From: Octopus sinensis
Taxonomy: Eukaryota
Direction: 5' to 3'
DNA length: 64,000 nt
NCBI RefSeq assembly: GCF_006345805.1
Contig: NC_043001.1
Location: 44,640,001-44,704,000 of the forward strand
In this document: piece after piece, positions 51,501-61,313 of the stretch
Layout of the letters: each line of letters starts with the position of its first letter
How positions within the stretch are numbered: position 1 is the stretch's first letter
Translations under genes and position numbers: made by a program
Notes under the pieces: model-generated
What the model was told of the DNA's origin: nothing
Database searches by the model: none
Seen by the model: the letters and a program-made list of their open reading frames with translations, nothing else

Positions 51501-54500
51501 TTGTGTGTTATTTTCACAGGGTAAATTCCGTAGCATCAACCAGCTGTTAACTGATGTGTATGTACATGTAGGCAACAGTCTATGCACTGATCTGAAACCA
51601 CATGACACAGCATTGATGTGCACACCACCTTCTTCACCAAGTGGTGTTGACAAAGAAGGCAATGCACCTGTAGTGGTAAGTCAACTCATCTTTTACTTTC
51701 TAAACCTACAAATCCAAGCCTTTATTCCTCAAATTTTTTTTTGAAAACTTCTTTTAACAGTTCTTCAAAATTCTTTTATAAACTTTCTACCCATTTAAGT
51801 AGCCATTGCCTCTGGATAAGGTACTTTATTCTGTAAGCCTCTCTCTACCTTGATGGCAAAACAGATTGCATTCTTACTTTACAGTTCAGCAATTATCCCG
51901 AAAAAGCACATCACAAGGGTCAACTATCCTGCAGAAAGTATGTAACCCTGCTTACTTCAGACTACCTAGATGACAAGTCCCAGTTTCCCCTGACTGATGA
52001 GTGCTTTACAATTGGGAAGGAAACTTCAGTTATGAAAAATATTGTACAAAGATAAAATCTCACCTAAACTAATATGTAAAAAAAAAATGCATATAAAATA
52101 CAAAAAGACACCTTGGAATTTTCATTTTATTAAAATACCTCCACTTGTATCTAAACTACCCTCTCAACTGTCTGGAGGAATTACAACTGTGTTTCGTGGT
52201 CTGCCACCCCAACAGCTCCTTTACAGGATCCAGTTAGCTCAAGACATCATCAGGAGGAACTACGTCCAGTTTTGGCCCCTACTCCTCTACCGTTTTGATG
52301 TGGCAGGCCCCCACTTTCGGAGGTGTCTTCAGCTCTGGTGTTGGATGCATGTCTTCTTTCTTCTGTTCCCTGGCCTCTTCGATGTATCGTCAGCGAGTGT
52401 TAGCCGGTGACTGACTGACTTGTCAAATTTTTTCCCATTAAATACCTGCCGCATAGGCTCCAGCAGGCAGCCCCAGCAAGTTGTCACATGACGCTGTCTC
52501 ACCTTAACTGACTAGTGAAGGTGCATAGTTTTAGCCCACGCATTCTCTAAACGACCGTCACCTGTCAGTCAGTGAAGCTGATTCAGCGTCAACTTGTCTC
52601 ACCTAACTGTCTTAACCCTTTGATACCAACCTACCTGAGACCACTCTAGGTTCTAAGGCACAAACTTCTTGTTTCAAAGCGATGTAAATTTAAACCTTCC
52701 CTCCAAACTTCATGCTAATCCATGCTCCAAACACCAGCTTAATAATGACAAAGTTGTTTTTCTAAATCCTTCATTATTTTCAAAATTTATTGAAGCAAAG
52801 GTAGTGTATTTCATCAGAAATATAGCAACAAAGGCTTTAAGACAGTGATGTTTAGCTCTTTCTTAGGACTGCAGAACCAAGACACCGGTACATCCATGCC
52901 TACAAATGCTATAAAGTACCTCTGTTAGGATTCATTTTTCTTACCACCACCCCTCAAATAATACCCTGCCTCACATCCTAATGGTTGGTTAACTGAACTG
53001 TCATTTTTTTCTTTAATTCTTTCTTTCTGTTCTTCCTTCTCTAGCTCCATATTGGTCAGTACAAGTCAGACATTGGTTACTTGAGCTACTACGAGGAACA
53101 GGAAGGAGAAAGACCTATAGCCCTTGGCATAATCCTTGGTGTGGCTCTGCCGATGCTGACAATCATCATCCTGTTGACAGTATGTGTAGTGAGGCGCCAT
53201 ATGAAGCATGATCCCAGCGACAACTATATCCCTGATGTACTCAAGGACTATGAGGGCAAGAAAGAAAATGAAGAAGCCATTGGGATGAACCACATGTCAG
53301 CTGGTACAATGGGTAGGTGTCTGGCATTGTGTGTGTCAGAATTCATGTTTATTTGTTGATGTATGCAACATTCCATCTCTCTCTCTCTCTCTCTCTCTCT
53401 CTCTCTCTCTCTCTCTCTCTCTCTCTCTCTCTATCTATCTATCTCTCTCTCTCTCTCTCTCTCTCTCTCTCTCTTTGTCTCTCTGGGTCAACCGCGTCCT
53501 CCGCTTAATTTCTTTGTTATTCACTCATTCTTATTTAATTGTATATATTTTAACTATTTGTTTATTCATACATTTCGTCTCATTCAATACCCTGACCCCA
53601 ACGTTTGTTTTGTCCCCTCTTTTTCTCAACCTTATGGTGAATAAAGAAATACTCTCTCTCTCTCTCGCTCTCTCTCTCTCTCTCTCTCTCTCTCTCTCTC
53701 TCTCTCTCTCTCTCTCTCTCTCTCTCTCTACCGTCTTCTCTTTATGTCCATGCAACTCAACAGCAACACAATAATATGAATCCATAATGTTACACTTCAT
53801 ACTCACTGAAAAGATGCTTTTAAACAGAATATGTTTCCCCACTTGTCAATATTTGTGCATGGATCTTTTCAAGTATATATTTACACTTCTGCTTGTATGT
53901 ATGTATGTGTGTGTGTGTGTGTAGTCATCTTTGTACATCTGTATAGTCATTAACATGTGTGTGTGGTCTTAATATGTGTATGTATACAATCATCTGTCTG
54001 TGCATGTGATATGTTCTATGAAGGTCAACCTTGTAGTTTATTCCCCTAGGATCAATAGAATAGATTAAGTCAAGTGCTAGGGTTAATTAAATCAACTAAA
54101 TTCTTTGCCCCCAAATGTATGACCCTGGACCAAAATTAGAAATTGCTATTCATTCGTTTTATGGCTTTTTCTTCTTTTTTTTTAAATATTTTCATTAGAT
54201 TCCTCACAGTACATCAGTGAACTCCTGGCCAGCTTCGATGATGAACAGGAACGACAGCAAATAACAGAACTTCTCATTACACGAAACAAGCTAGACATTG
54301 GAGAACTCCTTGGTAAAGGTAAGCATTAGAATGGTAGAATTAGTTTGACCACTGTATGGTTAGCTACAAGGCATTATCATTATTGTTTAGCCTTATCTCA
54401 GTCCTGATAAACCAAACATATGATCAGTGGAGGCTAATGGCCTAGTGGTTAGAGCAGTGGACTCGCAGTCAAGTGATTGCAGGTTCGAATCTCAGACCGG

Positions 54501-61313: not shown

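Follow-up and report, generated by a model that had tools for sequence, protein, structure and literature searches.

The kinase fold can signal without catalysis, as has been shown for HER3, PTK7, RYK, ROR and EphB6/A10, and we know of no receptor pseudokinase in the MET family and of none with a plexin ectodomain. The closest described system to the gene reported here is the Met-LP family (Met-like, with a plexin ectodomain), which was named by Junqueira Alves et al. (2019, Sci Rep, PMC6374515) for sequences from Aplysia and Capitella only, with no cephalopod among them, and for which a semaphorin was suggested as ligand. Met-LPs combine a complete plexin-type ectodomain (Sema, three PSI and six IPT domains) with a single transmembrane (TM) helix and a MET-like kinase, and they are treated as receptor tyrosine kinases both in that paper and in a review citing it (PMC10084454). 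Catalytic residues or the pseudokinase status of Met-LP are mentioned in neither of the two papers, and pseudokinase catalogues may list a member; a literature search for surveys of MET or of receptor tyrosine kinases in cephalopods returned nothing specific. The window analyzed here (64,000 nucleotides of Octopus sinensis, contig NC_043001.1, positions 44,640,001 to 44,704,000 of the forward strand) holds at 11470-61313, on the plus strand, a gene which by its domain order and its homologues is a member of the Met-LP family and the orthologue of Aplysia Met-LP1, neither MET proper nor a plexin. Whereas the family was published as receptor tyrosine kinases, every mollusc member considered here is without the canonical catalytic residues, and the octopus protein is likely to be a receptor pseudokinase, i.e., a scaffold that is phosphorylated in trans and not an enzyme.

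Regarding known receptor pseudokinases, HER3 has HRN in place of HRD, is phosphorylated in trans and carries His for the alphaC Glu, a change that is also found in the Met-LP of Solemya. Both HER3 and the octopus protein keep the Gly-loop, the Lys, the catalytic-loop Asn and the DFG Asp, have Asn for the catalytic Asp and a residue other than Glu in alphaC, and end in a tail with docking tyrosines that would need phosphorylation in trans. HER3 differs in belonging to the EGFR kinase subfamily, in its unrelated ectodomain and in keeping the DFG Phe, which Met-LP has lost; moreover, nucleotide binding, allosteric activation and the partner are proven for HER3, whereas they are proposed for the octopus Met-LP. 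Convergence with HER3 (Asp to Asn in most orthologues) is a fair analogy at the level of a motif comparison. Vertebrate and fly plexins associate with MET, with ERBB2 and with the pseudokinase Off-track/PTK7, and Off-track has been reported to act with Plexin-A in semaphorin signalling; Met-LP resembles such a pair in one chain, a plexin-A-like ectodomain and an apparently dead kinase being combined in a single protein, as against Off-track together with Plexin-A. PTK7 and Drosophila Off-track (also RYK, ROR, EphB6/EphA10 and STYK1; PMC13259870) are likewise conserved receptor pseudokinases that serve as co-receptors or scaffolds, but their kinase subfamilies and ectodomains differ from those of Met-LP. 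The same 2026 review of receptor pseudokinases covers eight human members, and the words 'MET', 'plexin' and 'invertebrate' are absent from it.

MET and RON (MST1R) have the closest kinase domain by sequence and predicted fold, and the Sema-PSI-IPT logic is common to them and the octopus protein. MET, however, has one PSI and four IPT domains, the active E/HRD/DFG set, a YY pair and a bidentate YVxV docking site, whereas the octopus protein has three PSI and five to six IPT domains, D/HHN/DIG, FY, and Val at the position of the docking tyrosine of the MET YVNV motif, with a Sema domain nearer to that of plexin-A. Plexin-A is matched in the domain order of the ectodomain and gives the best Sema similarity, but its GAP/RBD module is replaced by a kinase fold in the octopus protein.

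The seven exons 21-27 (54199-61313, plus strand; by the upstream phase exon 21 begins at 54199, in agreement with the original prediction) join into one open frame which encodes a MET-type kinase domain; compared with all PDB chains, the best single-kinase-domain matches were to human MET kinase (E ~5e-76, ~41% identity). The features of this region are as follows.

54199-61313, plus strand: exons 21-27, end of the juxtamembrane region, putative pseudokinase domain (Pfam PK_Tyr, residues 1303-1561, 54294-61202) and C-tail
55485-55487, plus strand: beta3 Lys1335 of VAVK, retained (codon mapping; kept in 28 of 30 orthologues)
57141-57143, plus strand: alphaC Asp1353 (GAT) in QFLRD, where active kinases have Glu (human MET QFLTE in the PDB alignment)
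57500-57508, plus strand: HHN (CAT CAC AAT) for HRD, the catalytic Asp being replaced by Asn1430 (Asp gone in 27 of 29 orthologues)
57521-57523, plus strand: metal-binding Asn1435 of AARN, retained (present in all 29 sequences covering the position)
57885-57893, plus strand: DIG for DFG, Asp1448 retained and Phe replaced by Ile1449 (codon mapping)
57912-57938, plus strand: activation-loop segment, FY (KDFYF) for the YY pair of MET, only Tyr1461 kept (Tyr present in 26 of 30 orthologues)

The Gly-loop GKGNFG is intact as well (residues 1309-1314, spread over exons 21/22), and HHNLAARN at 57500-57523 aligns with HRDLAARN of MET. An original prediction, made from the letters of the window alone, had described a MET-type kinase domain with intact GKGNFG and VAVK (Lys at 55485), Asp for the alphaC Glu at 57141, HHN for HRD, DIG for DFG at 57885-57893, and the Asn of AARN and the Asp of DxG kept; codon mapping and the alignment to MET bear out each of these motifs. 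Its further description of a HER3-like pseudokinase receptor holds as far as the missing catalytic Asp and the retained ATP- and metal-binding residues are concerned, but the receptor belongs with the Met-LPs, its MET-like kinase being fused to an ectodomain of the plexin-A type, and is not a MET. When 70 tyrosine kinases were aligned, the Arg and Asp of HRD and the Asp, Phe and Gly of DFG were each at least 90% conserved, and changes at such near-invariant positions are therefore not ordinary variation. Defined by sequence, a pseudokinase is without at least one of the beta3 Lys, the HRD Asp and the DFG Asp, and the octopus kinase domain, in which the HRD Asp is missing, is a pseudokinase under this definition. 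Nucleotide binding by the domain has probably been retained.

Identical residues were found in three genomes (the window, Octopus bimaculoides and Argonauta hians) and in two contigs of a more distant cephalopod. The HHN codons CAT CAC AAT are common to four cephalopods (including the two contigs with an uninterrupted open reading frame (ORF)), one of which is just 69% identical in protein, and the DIG codons are GAC ATT GGC, with GAT ATA GGT in Argonauta. Assembly error, which the original prediction had raised as a possible source of the three changes, is excluded because the same codons occur in the genomes of O. bimaculoides and Argonauta hians and in two independent contigs. The sequence of the more distant cephalopod (P0279) is an uninterrupted ORF of 4764 nt on contigs of 5.3-5.5 kb from two sequencing runs (SRR29271456, SRR9969967), and it encodes HHN and DIG. 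Since these contigs are intronless, whereas octopod genes have 27 exons, they were taken as transcripts, and the gene is thus taken to be expressed and correctly spliced in a cephalopod.

Orthologues were collected with three queries (the kinase region of 323 aa, the protein of 1597 aa and a query of 1000 aa); the homologues listed cover matches of about 0.55-1.75 times the query length, and all counts are lower bounds. Regarding the cephalopods, full-length identity to the window protein was 98% for O. bimaculoides P0278 ('plexin-A1 isoform X1'), 86% for Argonauta P0121 and 69% for P0279. At least about 25 further mollusc sequences among the matches listed were 40-50% identical across their full length. 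Full-length orthologues with 40-45% identity were found in Haliotis, Patella, Babylonia, Nucella, Batillaria, Pomacea, Aplysia, Biomphalaria, Physella, Bradybaena, Argopecten, Mizuhopecten and Mytilus; the 1000-aa query added orthologues from Gigantopelta, Mercenaria, Potamilus, Bulinus and Mya, and the kinase query, for which proteins of 183-562 aa were listed and the 98% and 86% orthologues were not, added fragments from Solemya and Lottia. Aplysia P0288 ('plexin-B1') contains the Sema strings of Acali_Met-LP1 (XP_012936725) and is 42-44% identical to the window protein at 99% coverage.

The comparison of mollusc kinase domains, which the original prediction had proposed, yielded no Met-LP with canonical HRD and DFG together (0 of 30; cephalopods, gastropods and bivalves). 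The HRD Asp is replaced by Asn in 27 of 29 Met-LPs, mostly as HRN, with HHN in the four cephalopods and HGN or HSN in some others, while DFG is represented by DYG, DIG, DCG, DYV, EYG, GFG, GYG or EFS. The alphaC Glu is kept only in a few caenogastropods and one unplaced sequence, the others having D, N, H, K, Q or T. Regarding the remaining motifs, the beta3 Lys is lost in unionids, the Gly-loop is kept in 27 of 30, and WMAPE and AARN are conserved. In the pectinids Argopecten and Mizuhopecten (P0284, P0285) the HRD Asp is kept as HGD, and DFG has become GFG with loss of the metal-binding Asp; to judge from these motifs, they represent a different route to a non-canonical active site inside one Met-LP clade. 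The canonical MET-type sequences compared (Batillaria, Lymnaea, Potamilus, Saccostrea, Ptychodera, Branchiostoma, Acanthaster and human) retain E, HRD, DFG and YY, and most of them retain the docking tyrosine (YV, mostly YVNV). Met-LP and canonical MET occur side by side in gastropods and bivalves, including the same genera or species (Batillaria, Potamilus; also PMC6374515).

In a neighbour-joining analysis of 257 columns, the Met-LP kinases formed a monophyletic clade in 193 of 200 bootstraps, with an inner branching that roughly separates cephalopods, gastropods and bivalves; on average, Met-LP kinases lay at a distance of 1.27 from the outgroups, versus 1.00 for canonical MET-type kinases. 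As read from these alignments, the loss of the motifs is an old family trait, common to every mollusc Met-LP examined, and not an octopus event. The simplest reading would be that catalytic constraint was lost once, in the mollusc Met-LP ancestor, and that the catalytic positions have since drifted freely within a preserved fold. Among the matches listed for the 1597-aa and 1000-aa queries, which were mollusc Met-LPs and plexins only, there was no annelid Met-LP and no canonical MET of a cephalopod.

Three further sequences were considered in this context. A Capitella fragment (P0028), a candidate for an annelid Met-LP kinase, was rejected, the canonical-MET profile giving 348 bits versus 273. 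The earliest-branching Met-LP kinase in the tree is P0166, a Logan contig of 1516 aa with the alphaC Glu kept, HRN, DYG and a STEYLDVIG tail; its source may lie among the non-conchiferan molluscs or outside Mollusca, and the loss would then be of earlier date. In Acanthaster planci, the protein P0029 ('HGFR-like', 447 aa) has E, HRD and DFG intact and a tail, ASVEKEGGSEHIAMEI, which resembles the mollusc Met-LP tail with His for Tyr. If P0029 were an echinoderm Met-LP, the similarity of the tails would suggest a common ancestor, which would fit poorly with the two origins of Met-LPs proposed in the literature.

Substitution rates were also among the analyses proposed with the original prediction, and the ratio of nonsynonymous to synonymous rates (dN/dS) was determined according to Nei-Gojobori. 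Between the window and Argonauta, for which dS is near saturation in some regions, dN/dS was 0.069 for the whole protein, 0.062 for the kinase domain (dS 0.84) and 0.037 for the TM helix plus juxtamembrane region. Between the window and O. bimaculoides the kinase domain yielded 0.116; there are 24 residue differences between these two (dS 0.063), none of them in the TM/juxtamembrane region or the tail. The kinase domain is under strong purifying selection. An AlphaFold2 model of the O. bimaculoides domain, which differs from that of the window in 3 of 306 residues, had a mean predicted local distance difference test (pLDDT) of 88.2 and a predicted TM-score (pTM) of 0.88, with low values only in the activation loop (pLDDT 56-58) and the last residues. 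Foldseek against the PDB returned human MET kinase for all of the best 50 matches (TM-score 0.73-0.84), and a MET-like fold is thus confidently predicted. The gene as a whole codes for 1597 aa in 4794 nt, divided among 27 exons, without internal stops and with introns that are all GT-AG, in agreement with the claim of the original prediction that the ORF is intact and no decaying pseudogene. With its open 27-exon frame, a dN/dS of 0.06-0.12 in the kinase domain, the predicted fold and the cephalopod transcripts, the gene is functional.

The remainder of the protein is that of a plexin-like receptor with conserved membrane-proximal and C-terminal segments, in which the following features were located.

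27240-53044, plus strand: plexin-type stalk, exons 4-19, with (in residues) PSI1 467-517, TIG_plexin 539-608, PSI2 ~621-654, TIG_2 683-774 and PSI3 ~776-808, then three TIG/IPT matches (best 914-985)
53114-53191, plus strand: TM helix, residues 1205-1230, with GxxxG (LGIILGV), strongly conserved across molluscs
53216-53266, plus strand: juxtamembrane motif, residues 1239-1255, with Tyr1242 and Tyr1250 (mollusc Met-LP alignment)
61281-61310, plus strand: extreme C-terminus with Tyr1592 (61293-61295) in TEYLEV, which fits TxYxxV; candidate phosphotyrosine docking site

A Pfam scan of the full protein gave Sema, three PSI, TIG_plexin, TIG_2, three TIG and PK_Tyr. Five IPT domains were thus detected, versus six in the family as described, and about 90 residues next to the membrane leave room for a sixth. 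A PDB search with the Sema exon yielded Drosophila Plexin A at 6e-59, Plexin-A4/A2/A1 at 2e-40 to 4e-34 and MET at ~1e-17; the ectodomain may behave like that of a plexin. Solemya, a protobranch bivalve, is matched with E 1.7e-37 by a stretch of 84 aa that takes in the end of the ectodomain, the TM helix and the juxtamembrane region. Such conservation is uncommon among single-pass receptors and suggests specific contacts between helices or in the juxtamembrane region. Regarding the candidate docking sites, Tyr1242 is kept in 22 of 29 and Tyr1250 in 24 of 27 mollusc Met-LPs (surrounding strings NYIPD and KDYEG), Tyr1275 is also among the conserved cytoplasmic positions, and the tail Tyr is kept in 24 of 27 Met-LPs, the cephalopod tail string differing from that of most species. 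The TEYLEV string fits TxYxx(V/I), the consensus of the immunoreceptor tyrosine-based switch motif (ITSM) that binds SH2 phosphatases and adaptors, and is thus a putative site of this kind.

A mechanism can be proposed in which a ligand, plausibly a semaphorin, would bind to the plexin-like ectodomain and induce homo- or hetero-oligomerization via the conserved GxxxG TM helix and the surface of the kinase fold. An associated active kinase would then phosphorylate the juxtamembrane NYIPD and KDYEG sites, the single activation-loop Tyr and the C-terminal TEYLEV, and the resulting phosphotyrosines (candidates Y1242, Y1250, Y1461 and Y1592) would recruit effectors with SH2 or PTB domains. In addition, the partner may be activated allosterically by the pseudokinase, in the manner of HER3.

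Several points weigh against a receptor that is phosphorylated in trans and inactive itself. Inactivity is predicted from motifs, and several pseudokinases defined in this way have some weak or unusual activity left (HER3 among them, CASK, and compensation of the WNK type); the conserved ATP-site residues, the tyrosine-kinase-specific AARN, WMAPE and the one activation-loop Tyr would be compatible with residual catalysis as well. The partner kinase is hypothetical, and a canonical MET of cephalopods was not among the matches listed (about 0.55-1.75 times the query length). A semaphorin is a candidate ligand, and the docking-motif readings (ITSM-like tail, SH2 sites) are predictions from consensus patterns. 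The motif comparison is based on mollusc Met-LP kinases, and the loss is dated within Mollusca only.

A still-working atypical tyrosine kinase, in which the Asn or a nearby residue supports slow phosphoryl transfer and the receptor autophosphorylates as MET does, is the alternative that survives best, and it is nevertheless considered improbable. Arguments for it are the retention of Gly-loop, beta3 Lys, catalytic-loop Asn and DxG Asp in the octopus and in most orthologues, the conservation of AARN, WMAPE and the activation-loop Tyr, the very strong purifying selection and the weak activity that has been reported for HER3. Within the Met-LP clade, however, the HRD, DFG and alphaC positions drift freely, the Lys is lost in unionids, and pectinids keep the HRD Asp and lose the DFG Asp. 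This pattern is expected if the fold and not catalysis is under selection, and the branches are longer than those of canonical MET.

Coleoids recode mRNA extensively, and adenosine-to-inosine editing of CAC to CGC (His to Arg, 57504) and of AAT to GAT (Asn to Asp, 57506) would turn HHN into HRD. Both changes are single A-to-G steps, and CAT CAC AAT is invariant in four cephalopods despite a dS of about 0.8 across the domain between the window octopus and Argonauta; this identity of nine bases is probably due to chance together with codon constraint. That editing restores the enzyme is nonetheless highly improbable. The two contigs of the distant cephalopod that were taken as RNA-derived read CAT CAC AAT, i.e., the majority of transcripts there are unedited, and the RNA around the site is not predicted to fold into a stable helix (z = +0.31 for the mRNA, +2.2 for the pre-mRNA). 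The DFG Phe (ATT) and the alphaC Glu (GAT) are beyond restoration by editing, and the Asn is ancestral in molluscs without heavy recoding and predates the cephalopods.

An artefact or decay, i.e., an assembly error or a young, still uninterrupted pseudogene with three catalytic motifs changed at once, has practically no probability, as no support for it was found and it is contradicted by identical residues in three genomes and in two contigs taken as transcripts, by the 4794-nt open frame with 27 canonical introns and a dN/dS of 0.06-0.12, and by orthologues of the same state in three mollusc classes. The protein is just as negligibly likely to be simply a plexin that signals through a GAP domain, as its annotations suggest ('plexin-A1 isoform X1', 'plexin-A4-like'): the ectodomain is plexin-A-like and several sources name orthologues plexins, but a plexin cytoplasmic/RasGAP domain was not found in the Pfam scan of the full protein, the cytoplasmic part being a tyrosine-kinase fold throughout, while true plexins from the same homologue searches carry PF08337 and PF20170, and the plexin reading is refuted for the cytoplasmic part.

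A receptor pseudokinase phosphorylated in trans remains the preferred reading of the octopus protein. It is possible, but put forward only tentatively, that the Met-LP of molluscs, and perhaps that of lophotrochozoans in general, is a receptor pseudokinase which binds semaphorins and dates back more than 500 million years, the one-chain equivalent of plexin/Off-track or plexin/MET. If so, a dead MET fold, a GxxxG helix and a trans-phosphorylated TxYxxV tail would relay a semaphorin signal to SH2 phosphatases or adaptors, and Met-LP would add a ninth class, of independent origin, to the receptor tyrosine pseudokinases, the first in the MET family. The family was named as 'Met-LP RTK' (receptor tyrosine kinase), i.e., as a kinase, yet, to judge from the motifs, none of its mollusc members can work as a conventional kinase; studies should therefore be directed at docking tyrosines and a partner kinase rather than at autophosphorylation. 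With about 30 naturally occurring versions of a dead MET-type active site, the family offers comparative material on the non-catalytic constraints of the kinase fold, the pectinids being a separate case. Met-LP also bears on the divergence of plexin and MET signalling, and its interest is both evolutionary and mechanistic.

Annotation is affected too, public names running from 'plexin-A1' to 'hepatocyte growth factor receptor'. The orthologues P0278, P0121, P0288, P0280 and P0136 carry varying names ('plexin-A1', 'plexin-A2-like', 'plexin-A4-like', 'plexin-B1', 'PLXNA'), and 'hepatocyte growth factor receptor(-like)' and 'hypothetical protein' occur in the same group; no name reflects the Met-LP architecture or the putatively dead kinase.

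The gene model was obtained from a tblastn comparison with Argonauta P0121, which gave 27 collinear matches, followed by splice refinement; the junction of exons 5/6 (30301/31512) was set by eye. Exon 1, one PSI and some IPT exons were located with phmmer, using as query a human MET sequence, which served as a lead only and for nothing else. A full scan of exon 1 against 1.84 billion representative proteins led to the 1597-aa P0121, i.e., Argonauta hians 'plexin-A4-like'. The annotated proteins of O. bimaculoides and of Argonauta each map exactly onto 27 exons of matching structure in their own locus. The coding exons are as follows.

11470-12534, plus strand: exon 1 (355 aa), with start codon, probable signal peptide at residues 1-25 (11470-11544) and the larger part of the Sema domain
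11470-12534, 23584-23766, 24136-24264, 27219-27319 and 30157-30301, plus strand: coding exons 1-5 (tblastn and splice refinement)
31512-31674, 31930-32020, 32870-32981, 34175-34291 and 35656-35760, plus strand: coding exons 6-10 (tblastn and splice refinement)
38528-38627, 39658-39824, 40671-40822, 42554-42659 and 44477-44613, plus strand: coding exons 11-15 (tblastn and splice refinement)
45409-45573, 47063-47156, 49649-49903, 51520-51675 and 53045-53312, plus strand: coding exons 16-20 (tblastn and splice refinement)
54199-54318, 55414-55497, 57100-57284, 57419-57528 and 57854-58016, plus strand: coding exons 21-25 (AG/GT borders, single frame)
59395-59531 and 61130-61313, plus strand: coding exons 26-27 (AG/GT borders; TAA stop at 61311-61313)

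The first coding intron (12535-23583) measures about 11 kb and follows an unusually large first coding exon of 1065 nt, which resembles the large Sema exon of vertebrate MET. The same 27 exons span 30 kb in the more compact locus of Argonauta versus 50 kb in the window.

Scans of the window for tRNA genes, Rfam families and tandem repeats gave nothing relevant. About 24% of the window matches other parts of the window. A SINE-like (short interspersed nuclear element) unit, GGC.GCGAGCTGGCAGAA.TGTTAGCAC.CCGGGC.AAATGC..., recurs in both orientations in the introns of the kinase domain, and no tRNA or RNA family was found in it (ARAGORN, Rfam); self-matching stretches are seen, e.g., at 58365-58560, 58735-58930, 60575-60770 and 60825-61010. 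Intron 22 contains a foldback element at 56539-56741, whose two arms of 95 nt show 86% complementarity and are separated by 13 nt. A (CAT/CAC)n repeat borders the element on its left side and the complementary (ATG/ACG)n on its right side; in appearance it is a hairpin similar to a miniature inverted-repeat transposable element (MITE) or a palindromic insertion. Two microsatellites were noted, (TC)54 at 53376-53484, some 60 nt past the splice donor of the exon that encodes the TM helix, and (TA)45 at 3075-3165, upstream of the gene.

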